In this document: one piece after another, positions 4,118-30,956 of the stretch
How the letters are laid out: each line of letters opens with the position of its first letter
How positions within the stretch are numbered: position 1 is the stretch's first letter
Source: Ophelia neglecta
Lineage: Eukaryota
Assembly (NCBI GenBank): GCA_965285935.1
Contig: OZ260661.1
Location: forward strand, 54,312,001-54,376,000
Reading direction: 5' to 3'
DNA: 64,000 nucleotides
Made by a program: the position numbers and the translations under genes
The notes under the pieces: model-generated
Told to the model about the DNA's origin: nothing
The model's database searches: none
What the model saw: only the letters and a program-made list of their open reading frames with translations

Positions 4118-7100
4118 ATGGCCTGCGGACATCCAAACAGGCCTTTGTCTGTGTGTAATAGTGTAGAAAACTTAATTGAATCGGTGACAAGATGCTCTGA
4201 ATGTTGTGCTACACTCCCCAAGCATCTAGGCTTTCATTGCCCACTTTGCCCTGCCCATCAATTCAAGCCCACAAGGCGAAGTTTCGTTGTATCCCATCTA
4301 CATGCTTCTCACTGGAAACATCGTGTGCACAGTCCTACAGGTAAGTGATCAATGTACTTTCATTCATTTATATATAGCTTTTTTTGTAAACACATAAATG
4401 CAAAATACTAGAATTGCTCAATTACAGTGTCAATGAGGAGGTCCCTTGCTTATGCTAGCACAGTTATTTAAGCCAAATGAAATTACAAATGTTATGTGTA
4501 AAACAGTAAAAGAAAATTGTTGCATGAGGACATGTTTTGTTATATTTTCTGAGTTCTCACCTTCAGAAAATTAAGTAAATAATTGATGTCATCACATATC
4601 TACCATTCATGATATTGCTAGTGATTTATTTATATAAATTCATAATTTCTTGTCTGTGCACACTTGTACAGAATGCCTAGATGTTGCATGTTGGGTCATG
4701 TACAGAACTTGAAAGAAGCTCTATTTGTTTTTTAAAAGCCTATATGGATTTGAGCTCTTAATGATTTTATTGGCATCGAGAAGGATCGCCAGTTAGTCTA
4801 AAAATTTTTACCAAGGTACCAAGTATTTAAATTTCAAAATCAGTTGTATCTTGAATTTAAAATTCTCTTGTGCTCTGTATCATAATTTCACTGAAAACTG
4901 TATCAAGTACCAACATTTCAAAATATGTTATTACAAGTGGTTGGCATACTAAGGAAAGCGGCTTTTAATGCGGAAAAAAATGTACAAGCATAATTGTATC
5001 AAAATTTCATACCCTTAAAAAAAGGTATTGGATTTTCAATTACCCTGTATTTATCATCAAAATTTCATTATGCCTGTAGCGCGAATTCAGGGTCTGTATT
5101 GCGAATCAAAATTTCACATAAAGCTGTATCACATATTTCAATTTACCCCTTGCAGGGCCCTTTCATGGTAACTTGTTGTTATTTATAGTGCAAATAAACA
5201 ACAAGTCTAATTGTTGCATTTGTAAGGTTATCGAGTTGAAACCTTTGGAGAAAGACCTTCTGTTCACAGGTTACCCCCTGTTACAGGCTACAAGTACCCC
5301 AATCGGGAATGATAATCAGTATTAGTAATATATCCTGTGTCTAACATTACTGCCAAAATTTACTGCTTCCACGACTATTGACAGAAGCAAATTCTTCTTA
5401 CTAGATTTTGTATTAATAATCAAATATATATATGATGGTAGTTTGTTCATCAGTTCTCATCATCATTTTATGCACCTTTTTTTTCAATCAAAACAGTATT
5501 GTAGTCCTTCTGCATACACACCTAAAGAAAAAATATTTGACTCATTCATGCAAGTTCTAAACATTGACTGTAGTGAAAAAATTTCCTGCCACAACAAGAA
5601 GTGGCAATAATCAAGTTTATCTTGATACAAGATGCACATTTCTTATCTCCTAATGGCACCAGGAGTGTCATTACCAAGTTATCTCCTGTTACACACTGAG
5701 CTTGGTGGTTATTAGCTGCTTTGAGTTCCCAATATTGCCACGCACCATGTCCCAAAGGTGGATGTTTTATGCTTTGATTTTATTCACTTTAGTCATTACA
5801 CCATACTTTGTCAATTAAAAATGTATACATGTATTATAATGTCCCTTGATTAGATCCAGTTGACAGCTGCTGCTTACTGGTGCTGTGCTTTTATCAGGAG
5901 AACTGTAAACTTAATTTGTTTATATAGAACTCACATCACAACTTTGCCAGGAAGATCACTTGATATGTAGATGACCACATTCATGTTAATTTTAGAATAT
6001 AAGAGCTATGAAGTATGCCATTGATTAAAGCTTATCACTCCACTGCCTCCCAAATCATTAATTTGATACTAAAAAAGTTCCTAAAATCTTAATTTAATCC
6101 TTGTGACAATATGGACTCTTTAGATCTTTTAACTGGCATAATCAGTTCATTTAAAGTCTATACCTTGGACCAGTCACTTCCTGTTATATCTCAGCTCTCA
6201 ACATTTGGACCTAAACTATACATGAAAATCAGTGGAACTGAAGTCTTTACCAAAAGTATTTAATAATGCTTATACTAGTATGCCATAGGAGTCTATGCTG
6301 GAACAAACATACATTTTAAAATCTGGATGGTTTTATTTGATTGGTCATGGCATCTTCACCAGGAAACACAGCCAAGAGGAAATACCCTTCCTTAAAAGTG
6401 CAAATACCAGGGGACAGTAATGCCAAGGTTTCTTTATTTGAAAAGTGACCGGGGCGTAAAGTTTAACGATTAATAAAGTTGATATTTCATGAATTATTTA
6501 AGTGTTGTTTCACTAGACTGACTTGCCACAGAGCTGAATGTTTTCACTTGGCACTTACCATGTGCACATGGCAGTAATATAATAACACATGGCTGCAGTT
6601 GTTAGCCTGGTTACAATATCACAGCCAATGAGAGGGCATCTTTATCAGTTAAGCATGCTCATCTCAGACACAACAAACCATAGATATAGAGAATACATAG
6701 ATTCGCAGCATTTCTCATTGATTTTGTATATCAATAATCATGCCCCAATATCTTTGCTGTTCAGGCGCATTAATTAGAGTATCACGACTACAAGCACATT
6801 GTATAGGCCCTATCTAATACATTTATAAATGCAAGTCGTGTTTTTTTGCGCAACGCTAATCATCAAAACAGTTATTACCTTGAATATCCTTAACATCTGG
6901 TCATTATTTAGGGAGGTGGGCTGAGACTTATGGCACCCAAAGATTGGGGGGGGGGGGGGAGGTCAGAGATTCGTGGCAAGTGAAAATGGAGGGGTGGAGG
7001 GGGGTTTATAAAATAAACCCTGACAACCTGCCCCGAACACCACCCCCATTCAGTTCAGATTTTCCATGGTGATCAAATATTATATCATGGTATCTCTAGT

Positions 7101-10100
7101 GTGACTGGTATATGAATATTCTATGTACAGTCCACATGTAGTAAACTAGTGATCTCCCAGCGGTACATTTATGAGTAAAGTCCCTTTTTTGCTGTGAAAC
7201 CCAGACAGTGATTTAGATTGTTTATAACTGATACTTGTATGTTACGTATACATGCAGTTTCATAAAATAAAATTGTGACTTTTCCTTATGCAGGTATTGA
7301 CAGACACCTCTAAACTTAAAAGACATTTTTTATATGCATTTCTGTTCTATATTCTTTTAAGGTTCATGTTCGGTGATATGTCATTTACCCCATGAAAACA
7401 TCGAAGGGCCGCATTACCACTGTGCTGTCTGTCTGAAGCCAATGCGCCGGAAAAATGATGTTTGTAGGCACATGGCAAAATGTTCTGGGTAAGTATTCTG
7501 TATCTAGATTATAAATGTACAGTGAAACCTGGAAATTATGGACAGGCAAGGGACTGTCTTTAAGTGCCCTGTTTTCTAAGGTGCCCCTAATTTCAAGGTT
7601 CTTTTACTTATAAAACGAAATGTTGGGTCCTAATGTGGCTGTCCCTAATTATCAGGTGTAATTTTTGTTTTTCCTTCAAAATTTGTGGTCAAGAGCACTG
7701 GCAATGAGAGAATACATGAAAAGATTTTGGCCCTCATTCAGAAAATAATTTGGCCAACACCAACTTTGAAATTATTTTCTTACATCTGGAAAGTAATTAA
7801 TTTAATTCCTTAAAATCCTTCTTTTTTTTCATTTATGTAGAACTGATCAGGAAGTTGTACCACCTGTTACTCAGGAAGACCGCAGTACATCAGCTGCAGG
7901 TGTTTTGCATTGCGAAGAACAACAAAGTACAGTAACTGTTGGTGTTCCCCAAGAACAAAGTATAGTTGCAGATGCTTCCATGGAAGATGGGATATCAAGG
8001 TACGTTAAATGCCTTTTATGAATGCAGACCTCTGAACCAACACATTTATCTACTTTCAGTACTGTGGGCCAGTATAAAGGCCAAAATGTCATCAAGTATA
8101 GCTATTCCATTTTAAAATGTGATGGGGGAGAGGGGGCATAAGCAATTTCATCTCAGGTCTAAATTTTATACATGGTGACTTCATTGTAAGACTACTTATT
8201 AAACAAAGGGTTAAAGTTGTATCCACTGGATATATGTTTTGAAATTTTCAAGATTGTACTGTGACCTTGCTATGGAAAGTAGGTCAATTGTATTTGTGCA
8301 ATGGAAAGACACAATAACACTGTATCAATGTACCAAATATGAGCAAAATCGCTTTATTATTTTGGAGATACAGCCTTTTAGAATATACAAAATGGCGCCC
8401 ATGCCTAGTTATAAAAAGTTGGTCAAACTTATTTTCATCAATGAAAGACACTATAATACTCTCAAAGTGTAGCCAATTTGAACACAATCGGTCCATTGAC
8501 AACTGATACTGAAGCTCCAAAATTTGCAAGATTTCATGACCTACATTTTGAAAGTTGGTCAACCAAAAATTAACCATTTTAAGACAGCCCAAGGGCTATC
8601 TTCCCACCAAAGTTCATCAAAATCTGTTTTGGAGTATATCTTGCAAATTCATTGTGGGTTGGGCAATAATCCATTGCCAGGGTGGTGTATTTTCAAACAA
8701 TTCTAATTATCATTGGGACAAGTGGGGAGTTTTGGCCAATTTATGACAAGGGGTGTTGGTGAAGAAATAATTGTCACCAGGGAGGGTGGTTCAGGTTGGG
8801 TGAAAGAAGTAACAGGCCTGACACCTCCCCCCCCCCCCCCCACATATTTAGATGGAATAGCCCTTTCAGAAACTTGTACTGAAATGGCTATAATTGCTCT
8901 TTAGATAGAAGGTACAGAACATTGTGCCCGGTGTCATCTTCAGCCCATTGTAACTGTGCAAAAAGCATGACCATCTCCATAATGTGAAGTGTTGTGCGGT
9001 CAAGATTATTTCCTGGACATATGGCTCAATTCATTGACTTATATATCTTTATTGTTCATGTTCTCCATCAATAAATTTCTCATTTTTTGGTTGATAAAGT
9101 AATGCACCAATGGAAAGGGTCATCCATATTAGTGCTCATTTTCTGTTCTTTTGCAGGTCACATAGTGTTATTGACCATCCGTACACAGCCTCAACAAGGT
9201 ACTGGCTTAAAGTAAATCAGCAAAGCAATGTTATGTGTAATGCAACAGCAAATCAGAGATTAGGGTGCGTTTCAGCAAACTATTGCAAAATGCCAACTGT
9301 TAAACATTTCTGGGTAAAGAAGAGCCACTTTATTGTTTCAGGCAGTAATGTGCCCAGTAAAGTCAAATCATTACCAATACTACTGTCTATTAAACCACAA
9401 TGTTAATGTTTTTCACTGAAATTACATCATAAATGTATTTGTTACAGGTTCTTTATGATTTCTCAATGGATGGAATGTTCAATTATAAATGTTACTGGTT
9501 TCTTTCATTTCCCAGAATTGCCACAAGTGCTGCCTTTCATTGAACTCACTCCACTATCATCTATGTTCTTGGTAATGCAATAAGAACCATGCGATTCAAA
9601 TGCAGTGCTTTCTTTTCAGAAGCACCATAAATGCTCCAGGTGATGGAAAGAAGAAATGTCCCATTTGTTTCAACTTCTATAGTCCAAAATATCTTCCCGT
9701 TCACATAAAACAGCAACATGAAATTGGAAAGAGTTCAGATATTAATGAACAAAGACACCATCATAGTGTAAAGGTCGATGGCAACCATGGAATTTTTTGT
9801 GTCGCAAAAAACCTGTGTGGCCCTTACCACCCTCTTCATGTTAGTAAAATAGCTAGTGGGCCAAATGCAGGCTGTTTTTGTGAAAGTCGCATGTGCCAAA
9901 CTGTGGAAGGTGGAGCTATAAGAGGGAACAATCTTGCTTATGAATGTCCCCATGTTCAGTCGGTCAAATATGCCATTCCAGGTGACATTATCCAATTAAG
10001 GGAATTGACATTGGAGGAGATGGTAACAGCAAACTTCATAAAGAGAGAAAGGGCTACTGAAGTTCTGGCAATGCTAAATACTGCAATTACACATGGTGTT

Positions 10101-13100
10101 CCCTTTGCTGTTTTTCTTCCAGGAAAAGAGCGGTATATTTTTCTGTCAGTTCATTGCTCATCAACAAGGTATTACAGCAAATTACAGAGGACAGTGGTGA
10201 CATATGACACCGTGTCAAAAAGTACATTTTGCCGATGTTCCCGCCAGAAACGTGGTTGCCCACACAAAGTTGTTATGAAATGGTATCTGTACCAAGAAAA
10301 GAGGGACATCCTAACAGTGGATAATGGTAATGTGGATGATGATAATGAAAGTTGGAATGATGATGAAGATGTTCATATTGAGGAACTCTGTGAACTGAGC
10401 AAAGGTACTTGTCTATATACAGTTTTTAAGGTACATTTAATCCAAAAGAAGGTGGCAGAGGCCGTTTATCAGGCTCGTCCATCTATTCAGCCAGTGTGAA
10501 AAATATTTGTCTTCTATTCTCTTGTGTAAAAAATTACACATATGGTTATTCACTTATACCACCAATTTAAATTTTCTTGCCCACCCCATTCAATTTTTGC
10601 ATTTTCTGCCCCCCCCCCCCCCCCTAACCTACTTGGAACTCCCAAATTCCTTTTTTCCAAGAACCAAAGTACTGTAAAGCACTAATTTATTCGCAGACAT
10701 TAATATTCACTTATTTCGCAAGAATGGTAAAATCGCGAAAAATTGAATGTCTGCAAAATGCAAAGAATGTAGATACTTTTAGTACTAGCACATTGAAATC
10801 AGCAAAATTAAATGTCTAAAAATTTGGCACTAGACAAAGAACAGCGAAATATGATGTCCGTGAATTATAAGGGCTTTACAGTAGTTGATACTTTTTTGTC
10901 ATGTTCCCAACCTTCAAAATTAGAATTGCTCCATTCAGCAACATAACTGTTGATGGAACAGGCCTCTGCCAAGCAGGTGTTTTGAACAAAGTGAAATTCA
11001 CTATCCTGACTCCACTAACAAACATTTCCAGGCAATTGAACAAAGTGCAGAACACACGTGCAGACAGACATACATATAAATCTGAAAAGTTCATGTAACC
11101 ATAACCAAGGCATATGAACTTTTGCTTGATTATCCTTGCTGTCGTCATGTCCAGTTATGGCCATTCATGTGTTGTAACATCCATTAATTTCTAAGGCAAT
11201 TGTTGTGGCCATTGTCTGAATATAACTCTTTCCGTGCCTAACTGCACTATCTATACTGGCCAAATGCATGTCTCTCAATTATCTTTATCAATTACTGTTT
11301 AGAGACCAATAGTCATAACTGTGTAATATGAATTGCAAAATTAATTAAACAAATCAATCAGTACTCATAAATTGTATACAATCATCATGGTTCTTTGCAA
11401 TTATTGCATGGAAATCTCCTAAATGCCATATATGTAATAAAGTGGGGCTCACATTAGAGATAAGATAGGAAGAATAACATTGCATTTCATATTATGCCAA
11501 TAACTTTGACCTTTGATGGTCATGTTGCTTTTACCTGCGCTAGGCTACTGGAGGCCCCAATCAGAGATCATTCCAGTCTTTTATTTGTAGCAATGTAGGC
11601 TGTATGATTTTATACTTATGTGATGTAATTGTTATTATCTACATTACAGCTGCTCCAGAGAACTTAACCCAATGTAGATATCCTCCAAAAGATGTCAAGG
11701 TCCTGCAAACCATGTGGATGTATTTGAAAGAGGAAAAGCAATACCCATATCAACAGCATTATGAACCTGAACGAGCAAGCACAATATCTAGGCCTGCTCA
11801 TGTAGCACCCAAGGAAACCAATTGCTACCATTGTCAATCCAGGCTGAGTGAACCACAACTTGTGTCTCGACAGGGCAAGATTGTTTTTATGAGTGAAGTT
11901 GTCACAGGTAAATATTTAACAAGTGTAAAAATTAATTGCTGGCACAGTATACTTTAATCTCTAAACTGCAGCTTCATTTACTGAGTTGCAAACACTAATT
12001 AGTTTATGGTATCTAAAAGTATACCAGATAATGACAGTCAAAAAGAGTTTATGACATGTGTCATGCCAAAACAGGTTTTGGGTAAAACCAACCCTGTAAT
12101 ACTAAGAGAGCATCATTTCTGTGGACTTGGCAGGCTCATTGATGAATCTGTGTGAGAATAATTCTCAATATTATGTCACTAATGTGATGTTTTTACTTTT
12201 TACAGGGGTTTATGTGTACGTCAAACACTGTTTGAAGTGTCGTGTACCATATCGCTACCAGGAATGGGAGGACGGTTTGCACAATCATAATGATTCCTTA
12301 TTTGTTGGCATGGATGTTTGTTTATACATCAGGGCTGGCCTAAAGGTAAGTACAGCATTTTTGAGGGGTAGATGAAATAATTCATGAATATTTGCAAATG
12401 CTAAGTCTATAATAATTTGATGTGTATAAGCATTGAGTTTTTGTAGTCAGGTATTAGACCTACCTGTAAAACCAACTGGTACATTTTATAGTATCAAATT
12501 TATCATTTTTTTTTACTTTTCAGGAGCATATTGCAATTAGCCGGAGTGTTGGGGTCCTGTGCTCATTATTGAAAACAAATTTGAATGTGCATAGTATGCA
12601 AATGGCATACCTGCTTTTTGAAAATTTATGCTCAAACACTTATGATTTCAATTGCTATTCTTGTGGTTATCACCCAACCACTATTATATGGGATGGGATA
12701 AGGAAGGCCTGTTTCAGATTTGCTGGTAATTTGTTTTCTATAAAATATATGACTGCTTGCAGTATTGCATGTGAAAATTGACGTTTATGGCGAAGCATTG
12801 TTGTTGACCTTGCTGTACATATAAAATCTGTCAGTCAATGTACTATTAAACTATAGAACAATGGCTCATATATTATCGACTGGTAAGCTTTAAATGTAGG
12901 CAAGGTCAACAAACATACTTCGTCACAAGTCTCGTGAAGCAGATTTATCAGGAACATTAGAGCTACTAAGAAATGTACTACTTTAAATAAATGAAATAAG
13001 AACATTTAATTAACTGTATGTATGTGTAGCAAAATTAGTGATTTGGAATACATCACATAGTCCTTCAACCAAATAAATCAGATAAAGGTCTTTCATCATA

Positions 13101-16100
13101 ATGTGGTATGTTTTGAAAAAGCAAATAGTACCCTGCTGCCAGCGCCAGTAACAGGAACTAGCCTAAGGTGCTAAAAGGGGGTATTTCCGGCAAACAATTT
13201 TGTTGTAGTAAACAAGAAAAACCTAGGCGCCAGGAAATACTTCTTCAAACGTAGAATAATAGCCTAGGTGCTGGTCAAGTTTACATGTATCCTTTCAAAG
13301 GGATTGATTTAATTTATATCTTCCTTTACAGTGAGTGAACTGGAGACACCTCGTGCTGCCATTGAGGACACCGTGGACATTGACAAATTTTGGGGGGAAG
13401 TGGAATTTTCCATATTCTCTCATTCTGTCACCAAAGGTAAACTTTAATATCAGCTTTAAGATTCAAGAGTGTAAAGTCACAAGACTATTAGGAGGTTGTC
13501 ATCTCTCGCTGATATAACATTTCATAAGAAGCCAATTTCATCAGTGGAGGGGTAAAGGCAGTAGGGTACAAGGTTGTAATTAATTTCCCATTTGTGGCCA
13601 TTAGAAAGTTCTGCACTATGGTGAGTTTATAAGCACTCATTCACATATCTACCGATGTGGGTTTTTTGAAAAATCCTTATTAGCCCAATGAGATATCCAA
13701 CAGAAAAATATACCATGACCGGCTACTTTTTCCACAAAAGTGAATCTACCCTTAGATATCAGGGAAACAACCTTGTCCTCTACCAGGCAGGAGTTACCAC
13801 AATTTAATTTCTCAATAATTCACATTGGCATATCCAGGGGCCAGTCGGCTACATGCTCAATAATTACAACCTAGTACCCAGTATACTCTTGCTATGACAA
13901 CAAGATAGTCAGAGTATTGTTCACAAAGGTCTTGATATGCCCTTCTCATTGGTTGATTTGGCTAGCATGTACAGAATGTATTAACAATGATATTGTATAC
14001 CTCTATTTCTTTGATAGGGAATGTGAACTTTCCTACTCCCAAGCCAGCATACCACTTCTGGTCGCCATGGGTTGGGAAATATTCAAGGGCTTCCAGTGTT
14101 TACAACACTGAACACAAGAAATGTGCCTCCAGCAGGCAAGATGAGGGAGTAGGGGAAGTTATACCAGAGGAGTTACTTCTATCCCTCATGCAGGATGAAA
14201 AGGTTTTTATTTTTTGACAACTGTTACAAAATGTCTTATTCTTGCCCCTTTCTTTGTGTGGGTGATTAAGCTTAATAATAATTGGTTCATGTATGAATAC
14301 AACCTAGGGCCTCACTCTCACAAGTGTATACTTGTATTCTGCAAGTTATTTTATACTCAGCCTGATGAAGAAAGTGTGTTGTAATTTGCAAAATTTTATT
14401 AAAAATAACAATTGTGTGAATTTTTATATGCCTGTAAATGAGAGGTTCATGATCACTTGTTTCTTATGAAATTGGAGGGTGAGGGGGAGGTCCCGCCTTG
14501 TGCATTCCTCCAACACAAGGGGTGCCCCAGGGAGGGGATGCTTCTCATCCCAGACCAAATTCATGGAGTGTGTTAATAATATAAGCTCCTTTGCACCAAC
14601 CTATGTTTTGTTATTTCTTGTTATATTTTCCTATTTTTACAGGTTTCCAATGTGAGAAAGATCTGCAAAGCCATGAACATATCACCCGATGGATCCAAAA
14701 TGGACATGCTGACAAAAATGTATCAAAGTTCAGTAACCAGAGGCCAGCTTGATTTAGCATATGAGACGGTCTTCGGTACCTCAGGTGTGCACAATTTGTT
14801 CATTACAATTATTTATCTGGATTTTGTCATTTCTTCTTTCAAGAGAGCAAAATTTTCCTTGTTGCATCAGTAATGCAACTCATAAAGAATGGCAAAGATA
14901 TTGTGTTAGAGCGAACAAAATTTGTCTAATTGGTAACGTATTCACTTCAGATGCATAATCTTTTAGGTGAGCACAAATGATTGAGAAGCATTTGTCACTG
15001 CTTTTTTTTTTATGGCAATTGCTTCTCTGAAATCATTTTGCTATTTCTTTACTAATGTTTAAATGTGTTTTCTGCTCTTATTTAAAAGGTGGGTTAGAAG
15101 TTGGATCATGCCCACATGGGATCGTTATATGTATGAAGTCCCTCATCCGTTCCGAAAGTGCCAGGGATATTGTAGACCTTCTCAGATCATTAAAACATAG
15201 GCCAAATGTTTCTATAACAGACATTGCTCATCTTTTGGCAAGTCACGGAAACAGGACCGAAGAGAATTTCTTCAGCCCCCACAATGGCCGTCTAGCCATC
15301 GATTCACCTGAGAACATTGCTGCTGCAAAATCAGGGGTAATGTTTGAAATACCAGACATCATTGGAATAACAAGAGGAAATGCAGTGATAGAACCAGGGA
15401 ATTTGTCTTGCCATCCAGTTTCTGGTTCCTCCAATCATTATGCCTTGTATGATTGGTTTCACCAGGGTAATTGTAAGAAGCCAGAAGAAGTGTTGAGAAA
15501 CATTTCATGTCTTTCTGGCTTTGCTGGAATCATTGATACGCAAATAGTTGAGCAGCTGTTTAGCTCAATGAAAAAAGACTTGTATTATCTGAGTCAAATG
15601 AGGCCTGTTGTCCACCTTTTCATGTCCAGACTGCTACTTGATCTTCACAATCAACATGTGAATGACAAATATATGAAGTTTCATATTAAAGCTTGCAAAG
15701 GACAATATTCCATAAATGATTATGGCCAGGTTGTACATGGAATTCCCCAAAGTACTTCTGGTGCCGAGTATGACATACCACCAGCAGTCCAATCCCAACC
15801 TCCAATACCTACAGTCTCATCTACAAATTGGCCACATCAGCCAGTAACACCCAAGCACCCACCACCTACAGCCTCATCATCCACAGATATGCCACATCAG
15901 CCAGTAACATCCGAGCACCCACCACCTACGGCCTCATCACCCACAGATATGCCACATCAGCCAGTAACATCCGAGCACCCACCACCTACGGCCTCATCAT
16001 CCACAGATATGCCACATCAGCCAGTAACATCCGAGCACCCACCACCTACGGCCTCATCACCCACAGATATGCCACATCAGCCAGTAACATCCGAGCACCC

Positions 16101-19100
16101 ACCACCTACGGCCTCATCATCCACAGATATGCCACATCAGCCAGTAACATCCGAGCACCCACCACCTACGGCCTCATCATCCACAGATATGCAACATCAG
16201 CCAGTAACATCCAAGCAACCACCACCTACGGCCTCATCATCCACAGATTTGTCATGGCGGGAAGACTTATTACAATCTGCAAGGAGTATTACAAGTGGTG
16301 ACAGAATAAAAAACACAATTCTGGTTAATATTCAAGAGCAATTTGTTCACTTTATCGAGGAAAACAACAGTCTTGATGCGAGATCATTGGTTAGGAATAT
16401 TAACTATGTCAAAAATACTCTGTTTGCTACAGGCCGGCAATTTTTGGTTACAACCAGAAATATTGCAGGATATTTGGTTCAAGTCCATGGAAGTTCTAAT
16501 TATTGTGGTGCCTGTGCTATTAATAATGCCCTTGGACCAGACGAGTTTGGCAGATTTTCTGTAAGTGTGGAGGAGATGGACACAATGGCAGACCAGAAGT
16601 GGATGGAGTTATTAATGAACCCTGCAGTCTTCTTTGACACCCCGTTGGATCCATTTCGTGACAGAGAGGGCATGTACAGTGGGGAAGTGATCCTAGGCAT
16701 ACTGGAGGCAAGGGGAATTGAATGTGTAAGGATTCCCGGAAACACCTTACAATACATTTCTGGTTACGATGTAATTCACAATTGCTATGGATTTGCTGAC
16801 TCGAGGAGGATATCTTTTATTATTAAGTTGAAAGCCAGGGAGCACTGGGTGAGCATAAGACCAGTAAATGCTGAGGATGCAAGCCCTGATCAAGAGTTTA
16901 TCCTGGTGGATCCGCAAGTGCCCACCTTGCACCAGATGGGCCAAGGCGCTGCAGGTGATTTCTTAAAAAACAACGCTTTGGATCCAGGGGCCATCTACTT
17001 GCTCCTTGGCTTGAAACCTACTGAACACAGTCGGGTAGGTTGAATTTAATTTTAGGGCCTACATTGCAAGGGGACCAGAAAGAAGCTGTTTTATTATTGG
17101 TTCATCTGTTGGGTTAGTCTGTCTGTCTAGAATTTGTTTTGTTTTTGTACACAGGTAAACTCCAATGATGAAGCAAATGGTCCACAGCATACACAAGACA
17201 AGAGTAAGGATCAGGTGACTCAATCGAAGTACAACTTGCGAACAAGCAAGCAACCTAAGGTAAATTCTGAATCGGTCCTTATTTCAAATATCAATACATA
17301 TAGGTTAAATATATAGAGTGAGTTGAAGCATTGACTATCTTTCACCATCACTTTGGTAGTAGCTGGTGTGGTTTATTTGATATTTTCATTTTTATTTTAA
17401 GCGAAGAGAATCTTGGATATATTACCCTTATGCAGTCAAAAGGAAAGAAACATATTGTGTCTGCAAAAAATGTGATGACAAGAAGTGAGTTCCATTCTGT
17501 GATGGTTTGGTATTAGTTTCTGTGCTATTGATGGAAAACTGTTTAAATTGTTCTTTTTTGTTCATTGTAAAGACATGTGTACAAGACAATGTGCTCCTCT
17601 AAAGACAGCATTTATTTAATTGCATCTCTTTTCACTTAAGTACATAAGACAATCTACCTCACATTATGTTCATTGTGCCACAACTTGAAACCTTGGATCA
17701 CTTTATGGTGTTTTTTTATTGCTCAGAAAAGTTTTTAAATCAGATTTTTCTTTCAAGGTTGTACTGGAGGTGTGATGACTGTGATCAGTACTATCACCCA
17801 TCTTGCTTAGGATTGGATGAATCCAAGGAACCAGATTATTTTTTCTGCAAAACATGCAAGGTATTTTTTCACACAACCTTGGCTGCTTATCTTCAAAACT
17901 TAAATATCAAAGTAAATATTGGGTAGACAGTTAAAATTGCTAACATAATCAGCCATGGGACTGGCAAAAAGTGGCCATTATAGCCAGGTAACCTTCATAT
18001 GCAGGCACTTGTATGGGCACAAATGGAGAGAGGTCAGCAATAGTGTGGCCTAATTGAACAAGTCAATTTATTACACTGGTTTGACTTAACTTAACAATGT
18101 AGCAACAAAAATTTATCCGCTACTTCACCTCTCAGATCAAATTGAACCATTACATTTACATACAAGTTGTGTACTAGTCTTGAACTACACCCTCATAGGA
18201 TTGACCGGTAGGAGCTATCACTCCTATACTTAAACAGTGCTTTTGCATTGTCTCTGCTCGATGTTTTACTGAAAGGAATGAAATCTGACAAACTTACAAT
18301 ATAAAATGTTGTTAACTTCCTTCAGCCTGAAGAATACCCAGAATACAATAATGCGAAACGAAGGAAAGTAAGGGTGACGAGAAAACAGGTGTGTAAATCA
18401 AACATAACAGGTTGGGCAGTTGAAGCCTGCCAGTAGGCTGTAGCAAGCGAAGTTTCCTAAAATTTATACATGTACCATTGTCTCCCAGTGGGCTCTGAGT
18501 CCTGATATGGCCTAACCTTTGTAACATTTTTGAAATACACTATTTTTCAAATCAACCCCCCCCCCCCTAAAGGTAAATTGTTGATATGGTCTATCATAGG
18601 GTAATTTGACCTTTGCTTAGTGATAGAATGGTGTGGCTTTACCCCATCCACATCATGCAGAAGTAGTGTTGAATTGTTTCTTAGGTGTTCATTCATCTGA
18701 GTATTCTAAGAGAAAAAACCTTGTTTAATTTACTCACAATGCCTTCCTAGTTCATTCAATGAAATACCAATAATTTCAGTCAACTTCTGCTGAGGCACAT
18801 ATTTATCCTGGCTACATCTTCAGAAAAATCATGGCTCCAGTAAGTAACTTTATTTCAGTGGTCACCTTTTTAGCATAAGAAGTATCTGGAATTACACTGC
18901 CATTAGAGCAATTGCTGGAATAAGAAGAGGTTACGCTTAATAAACCTGTATATTCTGTTCTTCCTATATAGCTGTGCCCTGTCAAGGAAAGTGATAGATG
19001 TCATAGACATTTTTTTGGGAAAACAATGTTTAATACTGTTTTAACATAAATTGAGACTCAATGAAATCTTCTATAAAGCTTTTGAGAAGAGTTTAACTGT

Positions 19101-21268: not shown

Positions 21269-22861
21269 GCACTTCTTTTGTAAGTCAACAGTTACCGTAA
21301 TGCATGACGACAAAAGTTTAGTTTTACCCTTACCTGCGCATATATGAGTAAGAGTATTCTCGTTTAAGCCTATTAGTTCGATTAGGAGCAACCCCATGGC
21401 GGAGTTGGTAGTTGTCTGAACAGAGAGATTGAATCATTCTCTCAGCAATTATTCATCTGAATTTCACCTGGTGTATTGTTAACAGTAATGTACTCCCAAA
21501 CATTTTCCTTTCTGCTTAGGTTTGAGAGTTCAAAGAACTGAATTCCAAATACACCACAGACTGTGGGGAACTGATCGACAACTCGCTGCCATTATGTTCT
21601 CCCGGTACAGAGATGGGAGAGGACTTGCCAGCCTAACACTCTGCCTCTACAAAGATGAATTGTGTCAAAATCTTCTCTGATTGGTGTTGGATTATCAGCA
21701 CTGTACTTCTTGTTGACTCACTTGTGTAAGAAACAGAACCAAATTTGCTGTTCTCTAATCACATCTTTGTAAGCTGCATAGTGCTTCTCCTCATTTTCGC
21801 ATGCCTCACGTTATAACTGGAATGATGTCTTACACCAAGTTACAGAATAATACCTAGATTTTTGGAAGTATTAAACATTATGCCCTGGACATAACTGTTG
21901 CATTACTCTTTAGTAAGTCAAGTAACTCTGTTTCCTTAACACTGAAGCATATTTTGTAGAGATTACTTTTTATTATAACTAGAGTATGCTGTGATATGTG
22001 AGATTGTCTATAATTAATTTTGTGTAGCAAATCACAACAATTCTGTTTTGTTAACATCCTAATTGTTCTTTACCTGTGAGTAAATAATTATGTTTTTGAA
22101 TGATAATATGAAGAAATGATGTATTTTGATTTGAATTTTGTATCCGTGGTCGTGGTATGTTATTTTTTATATTAGATTTTTATGGCCCTAGGGTATGTAT
22201 AGGTAGTTTTTTAATTCCCTGGGACTTGTTGTAATTAGCTTGTTGCTTTCATATTCTCATGATCATTGCAAAGCTATAGGCCTATATTCCAATGATGCCC
22301 ATTACTTAAGGTTACGTTTAGTTGAGTAGTATATATATTCTCAAGATGATTACTACTTCGGGTATTATTCTATCACTTCAGATTAAAGCTATTCTAAGTA
22401 TTATCCTATGTGTTTTAGATTGTTGCTATTCGACTAATTATTGGCACTTAATATAAATGCTAGCTTAGGTATTATTCTCTATAGTCAGATTGTTGCTAGT
22501 CTATGTATTTTGTTCAACCTATTATTCTATATAGATCTAGTCAGCATTGTTGCTAGTCTCTGTTAGGACTAGATGTGTAGGCCTATGTTTCTTATATTTT
22601 GCATTGTATGGGTTTATGACCTCTTCTGCAGCGTTTTGTTGGTGTTTTGTTTATATACTCACGCATGTACAAGTACTACATTTAGTCTTTACTACCACCA
22701 ACTTGTGTATTATTCATATGAGTTATTAAATTACTGTATTTGTTTATTATCTTATATTATCTTATATTATTTGTGAGCTTTGTTTGTTTTTGTCTTTGGA
22801 TCTTATATATGATTTTGGGTCTTGCAAATTTAAAGATCCATTGCATGCCAAAGTTTCCACT

Positions 22862-25800
22862 GACTATTGCAGGTTACTCTGAGCTGACAACAATTTCCAT
22901 AGTAGGTTGTTTGTGACTATGTTAGTTAGCTCTGAGCTGACAACAGTCGTCATAGACTTATGCCTTTGACCAATACAGGTTGCTTCTCTCCCTTACACAA
23001 AGCTCCGAGCTCACAAAAATACTTAGTGAAGGCTTCATTTGAATATTACAGATCGCTCTGAGCTGACAACAATCTTCATTGTAGGTTGTTTGTGACTGTG
23101 ATAGCTAGCTCTGAGCTCACAACAATCGTCATTCACTTCTGTATTGGACCATTACAAGATGCTTCTCTCCCCAACACGAAGCTCCAAGCTCACAACAATC
23201 CCTATTGAATGCTTCCTTTGACTATTACAGTTCGCTCTGAGCTGACAACAATCGCCATTGTAGGTTGTTTGTGACTATGAAAGGTAGCTCTGAGCTGACA
23301 ACAGTCGTCATTCACTTTTGTCCCCGACCAATACAGGTTGCTTCTCTCCCTTACACAAAGCTCCGAGCTCACAACAAAACCTATTGAAGGCTTCATTTGA
23401 ATATTACAGATCGCTCTGAGCTGACAACAATCTCCATTGTAGGTTGTTTGTGACTGTGATAGCTAGCTCTGAGCTGACAACAATCGTCATTCCCTTCTGT
23501 ATTGGACCATTACAAGATGCTTCTCTCCCCAACACGAAGCTCCAAGCTCACAACAATCCCTATTGAAGGCTTGTTAGGTAGCTCTGAGCTGACAACAGTC
23601 GTCATACACTTTTGTCTTTGAGCAATACAGGTTGCTTCTCTCCCTTAAACGAAGCTCCGAGCTCACAACAATACTTAGTGAAGGCTTCATTTGAATATTA
23701 CAGATCGCTCTGAGCTGACAACAATCTTCATTGTAGGTTGTTTGTGACTGTGATAGCTAGCTCTGAGCTGACAACAATCGTCATTCACTTCTGTATTGGA
23801 CCATTACAAGATGCTCCTCTCCCCATCACGAAGCTCCAAGCTCACAACAATCCCTATTGAAGGCTTCCTTCGACTATTGCAGGTTACTCTGAGTTGGCAA
23901 CAATCTCCATTGTAGGTTGTTTGTGACTATGTTAGGTAGCTCTGAGCTGACAACAGTCGTCATAGACTTTTGTCTTTGACCAATACAGGTTGCTTCTCTC
24001 CCTTAAACGAAGCTCCGAGCTCACAACAATACTTAGTGAAGGCTTCATTTGAATATTACAGATCGCTCTGAGCTGACAACAATCTTCATTGTAGGTTGTT
24101 TGTGACTGTGAAAGCTAGCTCTGAGCTGACAACAATCGTCATTCCCTTCTGTATTGGACCATTACAAGATGCTTCTCTCCCCAACACGAAGCTCCAAGCT
24201 CACAACAATCCCTATTGAAGGCTTGTTAGGTAGCTCTGAGCTGACAACAGTCGTCATACACTTTTGTCTTTGACCAATACAGGTTGCTTCTCTCCCTTAA
24301 ACGAAGCTCCGAGCTCACAACAATACTTAGTGAAGGCTTCATTTGAATATTACAGATCGCTCTGAGCTGACAACAATCTCCATTGTAGGTTGTTTGTGAC
24401 TGTGATAGCTAGCTCTGAGCTGACAACAATCGTCATTCACTTCTGTATTGGACCATTACAAGATGCTTCTATCCCCAACACGAAGCTCCAAGCTCACAAC
24501 AATCCCTATTGAAGGCTTCCTTTGACTATTGCAGGTTACTCTGAGTTGACAACAATCTCCATTGTAGGTTGTTTGTGACTATGTTAGGTAGCTCTGAGCT
24601 GACAACAGTCGTCATAGACTTTTGCCTTTGACCAATACAGGTTGCTTCTCTCCCTTACACAAAGCTCCGAGCTCACAACAATACCTATTGAAGGCTTCAT
24701 TTGAATATTACAGATCGCTCTGAGCTGACAACAATCTCCATTGTAGGTTGTTTGTGACTGTGATAGCTAGCTCTGAGCTCACAACAATCGTCATTCACTT
24801 CTGTATTGCACCATTACAAGATGCTTCTCTCCCCAACACGAAGCTCCCAGCTCACAACAATCCCTATTGAAGGCTTGTTAGGTAGCTCTGAGCTGACAAC
24901 AGTCGTCATACACTTTTGTCTTTGACCAATACAGGTTGCTTCTCTCCCTTACACGAAGCTCCGAGCTCACAACAATACCTATTGAAGGCTTCATTTGAAT
25001 ATTACAGATCGCTCTGAGCTGACAACAATCTCCATTGTAGGTTGTTTGTGACTGTGATAGCTAGCTCTGAGCTGACAACAATCGTCATTCACTTCTGTAT
25101 TGGACCATTACAAGATGCTTCTTTCCCCAAAACGAAGCTCCAAGCTCACAACAATCCCTATTGAAGGCTTGTTAGGTAGCTCTGAGCTGACAACAGTCGT
25201 CATAGACTTTTGTCTTTGACCAATACAGGTTGCTTCTCTCCCTTACACGAAGCTCCGAGCTCACAACAATACCTATTGAAGGCTTCATTTGAATATTACA
25301 GATCGCTCTGAGCTGACAACAATCTCCATTGTAGGTTGTTTGTGACTGTGATAGCTAGCTCTGAGCTCACAACAATCGTCATTCACTTCTGTATTGCACC
25401 ATTACAAGATGCTTCTCTCCCCAACACGAAGCTCCCAGCTCACAACAATCCCTATTGAAGGCTTGTTAGGTAGCTCTGAGCTGACAACAGTCGTCATACA
25501 CTTTTGTCTTTGACCAATACAGGTTGCTTCTCTCCCTTACACGAAGCTCCGAGCTCACAACAATACCTATTGAAGGCTTCATTTGAATATTACAGATCGC
25601 TCTGAGCTGACAACAATCTCCATTGTAGGTTGTTTGTGACTGTGATAGCTAGCTCTGAGCTGACAACAATCGTCATTCACTTCTGTATTGGACCATTACA
25701 AGATGCTTCTATCCCCAACACGAAGCTCCAAGCTCACAACAATCCCTATTGAAGGCTTGTTAGGTAGCTCTGAGCTGACAACAGTCGTCATACACTTTTG

Positions 25801-28800
25801 TCTTTGACCAATACAGGTTGCTTCTCTCCCTTACACGAAGCTCCGAGCTCACAACAATACCTATTGAAGGCTTCATTTGAATATTACAGATCGCTCTGAG
25901 CTGACAACAATCTCCATTGTAGGTTGTTTTTGACTGTGATAGCTAGCTCTGAGCTGACAACAATCGTCATTCACTTCTGTATTGGACCATTACAAGATGC
26001 TTCTTTCCCCAAAACGAAGCTCCAAGCTCACAACAATCCCTATTGAAGGCTTGTTAGGTAGCTCTGAGCTGACAACAGTCGTCATAGACTTTTGTCTTTG
26101 ACCAATACAGGTTGCTTCTCTCCCTTACACGAAGCTCCGAGCTCACAACAATACCTATTGAAGGCTTCATTTGAATATTACAGATCGCTCTGAGCTGACA
26201 ACAATCTCCATTGTAGGTTGTTTGTGACTGTGATAGCTAGCTCTGAGCTCACAACAATCGTCATTCACTTCTGTATTGCACCATTACAAGATGCTTCTCT
26301 CCCCAACACGAAGCTCCCAGCTCACAACAATCCCTATTGAAGGCTTGTTAGGTAGCTCTGAGCTGACAACAGTCGTCATACACTTTTGTCTTTGACCAAT
26401 ACAGGTTGCTTCTCTCCCTTACACGAAGCTCCGAGCTCACAACAATACCTATTGAAGGCTTCATTTGAATATTACAGATCGCTCTGAGCTGACAACAATC
26501 TCCATTGTAGGTTGTTTGTGACTGTGATAGCTAGCTCTGAGCTGACAACAATCGTCATTCACTTCTGTATTGGACCATTACAAGATGCTTCTATCCCCAA
26601 CACGAAGCTCCAAGCTCACAACAATCCCTATTGAAGGCTTCCTTCGACTATTGCAGGTTACTCTGAGTTGACAACAATCTCCATTGTAGGTTGTTTGTGA
26701 CTATGTTAGGTAGCTCTGAGCTGACAACAGTCGTCATAGACTTTTGCCTTTGACCAATACAGGTTGCTTCTCTCCCTTACACAAAGCTCCGAGCTCACAA
26801 CAATACCTATTGAAGGCTTCATTTGAATATTACAGATCGTTCTGAGCTGACAACAATCTCCATTGTAGGTTGTTTGTGACTGTGATAGCTAGCTCTGAGC
26901 TCACAACAATCGTCATTCACTTCTGTATTGCACCATTACAAGATGCTTCTCTCCCCAACACGAAGCTCCCAGCTCACAACAATCCCTATTGAAGGCTTGT
27001 TAGGTAGCTCTGAGCTGACAACAGTCGTCATACACTTTTGTCTTTGACCAATAGATCTACAGGTTGCTTCTCTCCCTTACACGAAGCTCCGAGCTCACAA
27101 CAATACCTATTGAAGGCTTCATTTGAATATTACAGATCGCTCTGAGCTGACAACAATCTCCATTGTAGGTTGTTTGTGACTGTGATAGCTAGCTCTGAGC
27201 TGACAACAATCGTCATTCACTTCTGTATTGGACCATTACAAGATGCTTCTCTCCCCAAAACGAAGCTCCAAGCTCACAACAATCCCTATTGAAGGCTTGT
27301 TAGGTAGCTCTGAGCTGACAACAGTCGTCATAGACTTTTGTCTTTGACCAATACAGGTTGCTTCTCTCCCTTAAACGAAGCTCCGAGCTCACAACAATAC
27401 TTAGTGAAGGCTTCATTTGAATATTACAGATCGCTCTGAGCTGACAACAATCTTCATTGTAGGTTGTTTGTGACTGTGAAAGCTAGCTCTGAGCTGACAA
27501 CAATCGTCATTCCCTTCTGTATTGGACCACTACAAGATGCTTCTCTCCCCAACACGAAGCTCCAAGCTCACAACAATCCCTATTGAAGGCTTCCTTTGAC
27601 TACTGCAGGTTACTCTGAGCTGACAACAATCTCCATTGTAGGTGGTTTGCGACTATGTTAGGTAGCTCTGAGCTGACAACAGTCGTCATACACTTTTGCC
27701 TTTGACCAATACAGGTTGCTTCTCTCCCTTACACAAAGCTCCGAGCTCACAACAATCCCTATTGAATGCTTCCTTTGACTATTACAGTTCGCTCTGAGCT
27801 GACAACAATCGCCATTGTAGGTTGTTTGTGACTATGAAAGGTAGCTCTGAGCTGACAACAGTCGTCATAGACTTTTGCCTTTGACCAATACAGGTTGCTT
27901 CTCTCCCTTACACAAAGCTCCGAGCTCACAACAATACCTATTGAAGGCTTCATTTGAATATTACAGATCGCTCTGAGCTGACAACAATCTTCATTGTAGG
28001 TTGTTTGTGACTGTGATAGCTAGCTCTGAGCTGACAACAATCGTCATTCCCTTCTGTATTGGACCATTACAAGATGCTTCTCTCCCCAACACGAAGCTCC
28101 AAGCTCACAACAATCCCTATTGAAGGCTTCCTTGGACTATTGCAGGTTACTCTGAGCTGACAACAATATCCATTGTAGGTTGTTTGTGACTATGTTAGGT
28201 AGCTCTGAGCTGACAACAGTCGTCGTACACTTTTGCCTTTGACCAATACAGGTTGCTTCTCTCCCTTACACAAAGCTACGAGCTCACAACAATCCCTATT
28301 GAATGCTTCCTTTGACTATTACAGTTCGCTCTGAGCTGACAACAATCGCCATTGTAGGTTGTTTGTGATAATGAAAGGTAGCTCTGAGCTGACAACAGTC
28401 GTCATTCACTTTTGTCTCCGACCAATACAGGTTGCTTCTCTCCCTTACACAAAGCTCCGAGCTCACAACAATACCTATTGAAGGCTTCATTTGAATATTA
28501 CAGATCGCTCTGAGCTGACAACAATCTCCATTGTAGGTTGTTTGTGACTGTTATAGCTAGCTCTGAGCTCACAACAATCGTCATTCACTTCTGTATTGCA
28601 CCATTACAAGATGCTTCTCTCCCCAACACGAATTAAGCTCCCAGCTCACAACAATCCCTATTGAAGGCTTGTTAGGTAGCTCTGAGCTGACAACAGTCGT
28701 CATACACTTTTGTCTTTGACCAATACAGGTTGCTTCTCTCCCTTACACGAAGCTCCGAGCTCACAACAATACCTATTGAAGGCTTCATTTGAATATTACA

Positions 28801-29720
28801 GATCGCTCTGAGCTGACAACAATCTCCATTGTAGGTTGTTTGTGACTGTGATAGCTAGCTCTGAGCTGACAACAATCGTCATTCACTTCTGTATTGGACC
28901 ATTACAAGATGCTTCTCTTCCCAACACGAAGCTCCAAGCTCACAACAATCCCTATTGAAGGCTTCCTTCGACTATTGCAGGTTACTCTGAGTTGGCAACA
29001 ATCTCCATTGTAGGTTGTTTGTGACTATGTTAGGTAGCTCTGAGCTGACAACAGTCGTCATAGACTTTTGCCTTTGACCAATACAGGTTGCTTCTCTCCC
29101 TTACACAAAGCTCCGAGCTCACAACAATACCTATTGAAGGCTTCATTTGAATATTACAGATCGCTCTGAGCTGACAACAATCTCCATTGTAGGTTGTTTG
29201 TGACTGTGATAGCTAGCTCTGAGCTCACAACAATCGTCATTCACTTCTGTATTGCACCATTACAAGATGCTTCTCTCCCCAACACGAAGCTCCAAGCTCA
29301 CAACAATCCCTATTGAAGGCTTGTTAGGTAGCTCTGAGCTGACAACAGTCGTCATACACTTTTGTCTTTGACCAATACAGGTTGCTTCTCTCCCTTAAAC
29401 GAAGCTCCGAGCTCACAACAATACTTAGTGAAGGCTTCATTTGAATATTACAGATCGCTCTGAGCTGACAACAATCTCTATTGTAGGTTGTTTGTGACTG
29501 TGATAGCTAGCTCTGAGCTCACAACAATCGTCATTCACTTCTGTATTGCACCATTACAAGATGTTTCTCTCCCCAACACGAAGCTCCAAGCTCACAACAA
29601 TCCCTATTGAAGGCTTCCTTTGACTATTGCAGGTTACTCTGAGCTGACAACAATCGCCATTGAATGCTGTCGTAGACAGCGATAAGTAGCTCGGAGCTGA
29701 CAACAATTCCTATTGAAGGT
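22862..29720 (+). repeat. Satellite array of about 6.9 kb: 179-bp monomer (53+73+53-bp subunits around CTCTGAGCTGACAACA/CTCCGAGCTCACAACA), 358-bp dimer, 294-bp deletion dimer, 882-bp higher-order repeat
   Basis: Monomer starts at 22862, 23041 and 23220 (179 apart). GAATATTAC anchors at 24703, 24997, 25291, 25585, 25879, 26173 and 26467 (294 apart), then 26825 (358). Diagnostic variants recur at 882 bp (CTTTCCCCAAAACG at 25121 and 26003). Confidence 0.97.
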
Positions 29721-30877: not shown

Positions 30878-30956
30878 GAATTAGTGTTCTGAGCTCAGAG
30901 CGTTATGAACGGGGAGCGTCGTGAACCCGGAGGCATACTGGCAGGTACTGTTGAGT

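Follow-up and report, generated by a model that had tools for sequence, protein, structure and literature searches.

A Josephin-fold cysteine protease domain encoded in one exon with a probable KDZ-type transposase segment in Ophelia neglecta

Can a deubiquitinase of the ataxin-3 type form part of a transposon? This question is raised by a 662-codon open reading frame (ORF; 15055-17043, forward strand) on a chromosome-scale contig of the 762-Mb Ophelia neglecta genome, which we have analysed within a stretch of 64,000 nucleotides referred to here as the window (GenBank assembly GCA_965285935.1, contig OZ260661.1, positions 54,312,001 to 54,376,000; all simple coordinates below count from the first letter of this stretch). 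A preliminary description, made from the sequence of the window, had proposed that a KDZ transposase is fused here in frame to a Josephin deubiquitinase with an intact catalytic triad. We conclude that the ORF probably belongs to a divergent KDZ-type transposase gene with a fused Josephin domain and plant homeodomain (PHD) finger, lying in a repeated unit of ~27 kb that ends at 30953.

The exon which encodes the fusion, 15089-17034, is bounded by canonical splice sites (acceptor AG at 15087-15088; donor GTAGGT from 17035, phase 0) and is the single open exon that had been described. The preceding exon ends at 14784 (CAG/GTGTGC, with the donor GT at 14785), and joining it in frame to 15089 gives the sequence ...TSGGLEVGSCPHG, which is identical to the corresponding sequence in the Lineus longissimus protein P0005. 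Three parts can be recognised in the exon: a 230-residue transposase segment, a Pro/Ser/Thr-rich linker and a 237-residue C-terminal domain (16330-17040). The linker, which had also been noted earlier, is encoded by 7.2 copies of a 60-bp repeat; it is fast-changing, variable in copy number and not conserved between species, and its lack of a conserved cleavage motif speaks against a dedicated self-processing site. The sequence of the window between 13900 and 15710 was confirmed with 0-2 differences by independent contigs from three public runs, and it should be noted that these are genomic contigs of one sample and are informative on sequence rather than on splicing. The frame and its splice sites support the production of the transposase-type segment and the Josephin-fold cysteine protease as one polypeptide.

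The C-terminal domain is predicted by structural modelling to adopt a Josephin (ataxin-3-like) fold, and the matches lie far above chance. An AlphaFold2 model of the 237 residues, produced with the family alignment, has a pLDDT of 92, and when this was used as the query in a Foldseek search of the PDB, the top six matches were all Josephins (probability 1.0, E 2e-7 to 1.5e-4). VIA-align ranked ATXN3L first (Z 15.0 over 167 residues, rmsd 3.2), followed by ATXN3 (Z 13.0), JOSD2 (Z 12.6), three bacterial Josephin entries (Z 11.3-10.3) and a second ATXN3 entry (Z 9.5), and only after these seven Josephins (Z 15.0-9.5) did the next family appear, the C39 peptidases from Z 8.9. The first five matches listed in the Atlas structure search all carried PF02099 (TM 0.57-0.60 to PF02099 clusters), and the nearest clusters by Atlas language-model features were likewise Josephins. 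The structural check suggested in the preliminary description, in which a better match to another papain-like family would have spoken against the assignment, thus came out in favour of Josephin.

This assignment was also seen at the level of sequence profiles. When searched alone, the window domain matched only one Pfam family, Josephin (PF02099), with 18.1 bits and E 0.0026. When 1.8 billion representatives were searched exhaustively with HMMER, 47 relatives were found, and in an alignment of 33 sequences (32 relatives plus the window domain) 28 matched PF02099 at E <= 0.01, the best of them at 1.2e-15, with several scores exceeding the curated cut-off. The profile of this alignment had JOSD2, ATXN3 and ATXN3L as its five best sequences in the PDB (E 2.4e-4 to 1.4e-3, with JOSD2 at 2.4e-4 and ATXN3 at 1e-3); a phmmer search of the PDB with the Josephin domain alone gave chance matches only. 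The Josephin motifs quoted in the preliminary description are all present in the translation of the ORF. Its premise that these domains are normally confined to host ATXN3 and JOSD genes was too narrow, as giant-virus clusters also appear among the Atlas matches to the domain and the structures of bacterial Josephins have been solved (bioRxiv 10.1101/2024.07.24.604956). We note that the same genome contains host Josephin genes of ordinary multi-exon structure with PF02099 scores above the cut-off (C1:76227468-76246862 and C8:57402247-57403742), as well as a stop-ridden PF02099 fragment (C9:40090668-40090889).

Judged by alignment, the Cys-His-Asp triad (Cys16504, His16843 and Asp16909) is intact. 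In the profile-PDB alignment His16843 falls on the HW motif that contains the catalytic His in JOSD2 and ATXN3, and Asp16909 on NLDS in JOSD2 and NLNS in ATXN3, the site of the third triad residue. Overall, 25 of the 28 highly conserved columns are kept in the window domain, and the number of deviations falls within the range found among the relatives. One of the three deviating columns is the family-invariant Gln, presumed to be the oxyanion-hole residue, which is replaced by His at 16486, six residues before Cys16504 (the spacing from this position to the Cys is five in ATXN3); the others are F to M at 16672 and S to P at 16912. The claim of an intact triad is therefore upheld, but because of the change from Gln to His, full catalytic competence in O. 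neglecta is not assured. The Trp which follows His16843 is in the position of the aromatic residue described as the 'gatekeeper' of conventional deubiquitinases that accept Gly-Gly (bioRxiv 10.1101/2024.07.24.604956).

Strong conservation of the transposase segment was seen in 15 relatives (E 1e-38 to 1e-86), and the window copy retains all of the conserved core columns that were identified. The exon carries only the C-terminal ~two thirds of the transposase core, which, given the motifs of KDZ transposases, would include the DIAH Asp and the EQ Glu of the catalytic core, and the first catalytic Asp would presumably lie in the C..CG.HP...IWD segment encoded further upstream at 12524-12730. We regard the transposase as probably a divergent member of the KDZ type because of four features. 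A KDZ-associated CxC4 cysteine cluster (PF18717) lies just upstream of the core, scoring 23.1 bits (E 7e-5) in the window against a cut-off of 26.9 and 29.9 bits, above the cut-off, in the 50%-identical Tubulanus exon. Among the 30 Atlas clusters closest to the segment, 20 carry the KDZ family PF18758 (188 features shared, score 0.95). An hhalign comparison with 72 PF18758 fragments placed G..D.Q..EQLFS in register with G.TDGE..ERLWS, but this alignment was weak (P 0.026, probability 1.9%); the same correspondence can also be seen by eye. Finally, the relative P0045 carries, like Zisupton, an Ulp1/Peptidase_C48 domain, here beside the transposase segment and a Josephin-like domain in one protein, and it is the only relative with such a domain; no Ulp1/Peptidase_C48 match was found in any of the window ORFs scanned. 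The Josephin-like domain of P0045 retains the Cys, His and Asp with 7 of the 28 conserved columns changed, and its cluster is found on ENA contigs of up to 6.6 Mb. A profile search of a 5.8-billion-protein index recovered close relatives only, none of which was labelled KDZ. Two identical exon-like fragments 4.3 kb apart elsewhere in the genome (C49:119375-119515 and C49:123675-123815) match the beginning of the transposase-core exon (GGL..G.C.H...ESPRD) with 49-50% identity, and these sequences point to a second, related family in the same genome.

The fusion is not restricted to O. neglecta. The transposase segment and Josephin domain occur together in at least 15 protein clusters (clustered at 50% identity) from bivalves and nemerteans, with Crassostrea virginica, Mytilus edulis, Sinanodonta woodiana, Lineus longissimus and Tubulanus polymorphus as named sources, and the search for further copies that the preliminary description had suggested was thus successful both here and within the genome itself (see below). 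A comparison between pieces of window ORFs and the T. polymorphus locus (L030) identified ten collinear conserved coding segments, at 4160-4336, 9657-10346, 12202-12351, 12524-12730, 13325-13444, 14044-14205, 14691-14786, 15076-15687, 16171-16998 and 17747-17860, and the RefSeq model for Tubulanus likewise places transposase core and Josephin domain together in one large exon, which is spliced to PHD-finger exons. This recurrence in at least 15 bivalve and nemertean clusters, together with the matching exon order in Tubulanus, indicates that the fusion is not a local accident. The RefSeq model of the Tubulanus locus also includes tandem 22-codon mini-exons that are each paired with an intron and repeat with a period of 164 bp (L030:12021-12940), which lie between the Josephin and PHD exons as repeated exon-intron units.

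The gene as a whole is rich in introns, with 15089-17034 as its largest coding exon and at least ten conserved segments extending from ~4160 to 17860 (Table 1). No Pfam match was found for the most upstream of these, 4160-4336, nor a Pfam KDZ match for the exon at 12524-12730. Downstream of the Josephin domain, the last exon matches the PHD finger of the Tubulanus protein P0022, and the motif in the exon at 17155-17259 has Y-N-L-R-like counterparts after the Josephin domain in P0003, P0006 and P0009. By eye, this exon and the two that follow it (17402-17484 and 17758-17860) appear to keep the frame and to form a complete PHD finger.

Table 1. Coding segments, active-site positions and unit end identified in the window (L030 is the Tubulanus polymorphus locus).
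Feature	Position	Strand	Evidence
Most upstream conserved coding segment, Cys/His zinc-finger-like (...HCPLCP...SHWKHR...)	4160..4336	+	42% over 60 aa to L030 4175-4354
Large N-terminal exon, Cys/His clusters	9657..10346	+	32% over 233 aa to L030 7900-8592
CxC4 cysteine cluster, KDZ-associated	12202..12351	+	PF18717 below cut-off; 50% identical Tubulanus exon above
Conserved exon, C..CG.HP...IWD, presumed N-terminal core part by position	12524..12730	+	46% over 69 aa to L030 9135-9341
Small conserved exon	13325..13444	+	Collinear with L030 9434-9556, E 1e-5
Small conserved exon	14044..14205	+	Collinear with L030 9651-9812, E 5e-12; aligns to P0005 N-terminus
Exon before the fusion exon, possibly SAP-like (label solely from the name of the nearest Atlas cluster)	14691..14784	+	Matches L030 9992-10081
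Single open exon: transposase core (C-terminal part), linker and Josephin	15089..17034	+	ORF, splice sites, Tubulanus RefSeq model
Transposase core, C-terminal part	15089..15780	+	Motifs CPHG, ES.RD, I.DIAH, DWFH..N.K, G..D.Q..EQLFS
Pro/Ser/Thr-rich linker	15817..16248	+	60-bp tandem repeat x 7.2, TRF score 780, 96% matches
Predicted Josephin-fold cysteine peptidase, family-specific N-terminal helical extension, core from ~16460	16330..17034	+	AlphaFold2, Foldseek, VIA-align
His replacing family-invariant Gln (presumed oxyanion-hole residue)	16486..16488	+	Gln in 29/29 relatives
Catalytic Cys (NYCG motif)	16504..16506	+	Cys in 29/31 relatives
Catalytic His and aromatic gatekeeper Trp (EHW)	16843..16848	+	His in 29/32 relatives; W/Y/F next in all
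Third triad residue, Asp (LVDP)	16909..16911	+	Asp in 26/29 relatives
Predicted next exon, Y-N-L-R motif	17155..17259	+	AG before 17155, GTAAAT after 17259, phase 0
Predicted exon, first half of PHD finger	17402..17484	+	AG before 17402, GTGAGT after 17484; frame ...YCVCKKCDDKK
Exon, second half of PHD finger	17758..17860	+	Pfam PHD E 1.8e-5, 25.1 bits (cut-off 24)
3' end of repeated (mobile) unit	30932..30953	+	Four copies stop here, four different flanks

The gene lies within a repeated unit of which four copies, including that in the window, have 30953 as their exact last base and continue into flanks that are all unrelated, and this common end indicates that the unit has a defined terminus. 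The youngest duplicate, on chromosome 5 (C5:20752153-20770430), is 99.4-99.7% identical to the window over 10303-30953, with the exception of a satellite, and begins inside an exon. Two further copies, 97% and ~86% identical, cover the window sequence from 15105 and from 16221 onward, respectively, and a fragment at C1:26.89M (~80-89% identical) covers ~15590-17250 and does not reach 30953. Three of the four copies show decay, and the older copies carry stops, a frameshift and a deletion which removes the catalytic Cys; the only joint seen in the genomic contigs, between 16474 and 16513, matches the deletion in the decayed C1:16.98M copy. Over 16260-17040 the window and chromosome-5 copies differ at three positions, only one of which, a silent change, is in the Josephin domain. 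The 60-bp repeat array differs by copy, with an open frame of 670 aa in the window and 630 aa in the chromosome-5 duplicate (C5:20.757M), and the C5:31.907M copy has a much longer coding array. We suggest from these sequences that the unit is a low-copy element which is possibly still competent.

The predicted protein has, in order, N-terminal Cys/His clusters including CxC4, a multi-exon transposase core, the linker, the Josephin domain and the PHD finger. On the most parsimonious reading, the Josephin domain would be a deubiquitinase tethered to the transposase and acting in cis or locally: it would take ubiquitin off the transposase, which would then be spared from the proteasome, or off chromatin at a site bound by the PHD finger and zinc clusters, and in either case transposition would be favoured. 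Such a role would parallel that of the Ulp1 SUMO proteases of Zisupton and MULE elements and that proposed for the ovarian tumour (OTU) and VTD deubiquitinases of Helitrons. A more far-reaching proposal is that a lophotrochozoan KDZ-like lineage, found in bivalves, nemerteans and O. neglecta, carries an active Josephin deubiquitinase fused to its transposase and coupled with a PHD histone reader, as the first Josephin domain of a mobile element, and uses it to remove ubiquitin from itself or from chromatin, against silencing or for transposition; we see this as possible rather than probable, and if it is true, such elements could have carried Josephin domains between hosts and giant viruses.

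A number of our results count against a mobile KDZ-type element with an active Josephin domain. PF18758 had no match at E <= 10 in the window exons or in the 15 relatives, the window was absent among the PF18758 matches of the same genome, and searches with BLASTP and the family hidden Markov model (HMM) against the PF18758-positive exons of this genome found nothing. It should be noted that the Pfam searches were run exon by exon and that the transposase core is split over several exons. An AlphaFold2 model of the partial core (pLDDT 71) had no match in a Foldseek search of the PDB either, as is expected where a domain is cut across exons. The earlier identification of a KDZ catalytic core in the exon is therefore retained as probable, with the reservations that Pfam does not recognise it and that the exon holds only part of the core. 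For the Josephin domain, the PF02099 score of the window sequence is below the curated cut-off of 26 bits, and His16486 is present in all of the other copies in the genome, including the old and decayed ones. As regards mobility, only the window copy is full length with the N-terminal exons, and the other copies are truncated at the 5' side (at 10303, 15105, ~15590 and ~16221), a variety of truncation points which is not the usual leftover of cut-and-paste transposition. No inverted copy of the terminus was found when the last 22 nt were compared with the window and the last 200 nt with the genome, and no terminal inverted repeats (TIRs) or target-site duplications (TSDs) were found for the unit, of which only the 3' end is defined. 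The suggestion that the protein is transposon-encoded is in this way borne out by the four copies with their common 3' end and weakened by the single full-length copy and the negative search for TIRs and TSDs. Finally, a search of public runs found no RNA runs containing the window stretch.

Some of these points are better accommodated if the locus is a domesticated host gene, derived from a transposon and now immobile, with the other copies arising as segmental or fragment duplications. This would agree with the N-terminal exon at 9657-10346 having one match in the whole genome, with the truncation of the near-identical chromosome-5 copy within an exon, with the negative TIR search, with an exon-intron layout kept in common with a distant nemertean, and with the fact that the ten conserved window segments are all stop-free. 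We nonetheless consider domestication unlikely, as four copies with exactly the same end and unrelated flanks mark a defined mobile end, and copies which range from 99.5% to ~80% identity are decaying by stops, frameshifts and deletions. In addition, the Tubulanus locus showed no synteny and is neighboured by a Pao retrotransposon and a gene that is unrelated, the relatives form multi-member clusters on several contigs, and all of the conserved columns identified in the transposase core are kept. It is far harder still to dismiss the fusion itself as an artefact, in which two adjacent genes or an intron had been read through by chance, and we give this almost no credence; no RNA run was found that covers the stretch, but a 649-codon open frame spans both parts, the RefSeq model for Tubulanus has the same large exon, proteins with both parts are found in 15 clusters that represent five or more named species, and the genomic contigs confirm 13900-15710 independently.

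Other alternatives concern the activity of the protease domain. In this genome it may be a catalytically weakened or dead pseudo-enzyme that binds ubiquitin, given that His replaces a residue which is Gln in all 29 of the relatives compared, that two more conserved columns deviate (16672 and 16912), and that the loss of Gln is old, being found in every genomic copy including those that have decayed. This seems improbable to us when the triad is kept together with 25 of the 28 highly conserved columns, within the range of the relatives, when His may still be able to donate a hydrogen bond, and when the two youngest copies encode the same protein over the domain, their single nucleotide difference being silent. 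It is also distinctly improbable, in our view, that the Josephin-fold domain acts on another ubiquitin-like modifier or cuts the polyprotein between the transposase and the chromatin module. The papain-like fold class, in which Josephins sit next to C39 and UfSP, does include peptide-processing and Ufm1 proteases, which appear lower among the structure matches; the domain is placed between two functional modules and beside a flexible linker; and bacterial Josephins are known to cut ubiquitin at a shifted position (bioRxiv 10.1101/2024.07.24.604956). However, all of the experimentally characterised Josephins act on ubiquitin (bioRxiv 10.1101/2024.07.24.604956), the aromatic gatekeeper of Gly-Gly-accepting enzymes is kept in all of the relatives, and the linker varies in copy number, is not conserved between species and has no conserved cleavage motif.

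The probable KDZ-Josephin gene can be compared with three known systems. It shares the fold and the order of Cys, His (plus aromatic) and Asp or Asn with the Josephins ATXN3, ATXN3L and JOSD1/2 (PF02099, MEROPS C86), and an N-terminal helical extension with the bacterial Josephins PcJOS and PaJOS. It differs from the known Josephins in being only 15-21% identical, in its Pfam score below the cut-off, in being embedded in a transposase protein without the UIM or UBX partner domains, and in having His in place of the conserved Gln. Zisupton and KDZ DNA transposons, reportedly the subject of Bohne et al. 2012 and Iyer et al. 2014, resemble the window gene in having an intron-containing transposase gene with CxC4 upstream of the core and KDZ-like motifs (PF18758, CxC1-7). 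Ubiquitin and SUMO accessory modules are known in these elements, but the accessory protease of the window gene is a Josephin domain and not Ulp1, its core is not recognised by the Pfam KDZ family, and no TIRs or TSDs were seen. An F-box isoform of Zisupton has also been reported (PMC12062965). A precedent for transposon-borne deubiquitinases is provided by the VTD and OTU domains of Helitrons and Helentrons (Erven et al. 2022, PMC9741609), where, as in the window gene, a papain-fold deubiquitinase is found within the main transposon protein, whereas the deubiquitinase class here is Josephin rather than VTD or OTU and the transposase is of the DDE-type and KDZ-like rather than RepHel. For VTD and OTU, a role in protecting transposition proteins against degradation by way of ubiquitin has been proposed, with some lineages later domesticated, and VTD activity has been shown in vitro (PMC9741609), while KDZ-Josephin is known here from sequence and predicted structure.

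The preliminary description had regarded the KDZ-Josephin combination as undescribed, and this agrees with our own search, in which no publication was found to connect Josephin with KDZ or Zisupton (this was a full-text search, with the architecture figures of Iyer et al. 2014 outside its scope). No paper was found for the suggested link to HMGXB3. Some of the fusion relatives are automatically named 'ubiquitinyl hydrolase 1' in public databases, as the divergent transposase clade is missed by the Pfam KDZ family and pipelines consequently label these proteins only by that name. Deubiquitinases and Ulp1-type proteases borne by transposons are already known, and the fusion of Josephin and transposase looks like a new instance within that theme. 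The benefit of Ulp1, OTU and VTD to the elements that carry them is still unsettled, and a Josephin domain placed between transposase core and PHD finger would mean that a protease of the ubiquitin system has been recruited independently for a fourth time, which adds weight to the view that DNA transposons generally need to remove marks of the ubiquitin type. The finding would also widen the range of the Josephin family, which already includes host genes, bacterial effectors and giant viruses, and the compact domain, with its high predicted confidence and natural Gln and His variants, is well suited to direct assays.

A number of other repeats were seen in and around the copies of the unit. 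A 6.9-kb satellite (22855-29705) lies downstream of the gene and inside the shared unit, and its arrays differ between the two youngest copies. Adjoining the 3' end of the unit is an element of ~2 kb (30954-32945) with TIRs of its own (186 nt; 30957-31142 and 32756-32941, 97% complementary), and the sequence of this element also occurs to either side of the chromosome-5 duplicate and at a distance of ~300 nt from where the C1:16.98M copy ends. On the same contig as the latter, at C1:26861300-26881624, at least four repeats of a fragment limited to the N-terminal half of the domain, 78-84% identical and 2-11 kb apart, sit upstream of the decayed C1:26.89M copy.

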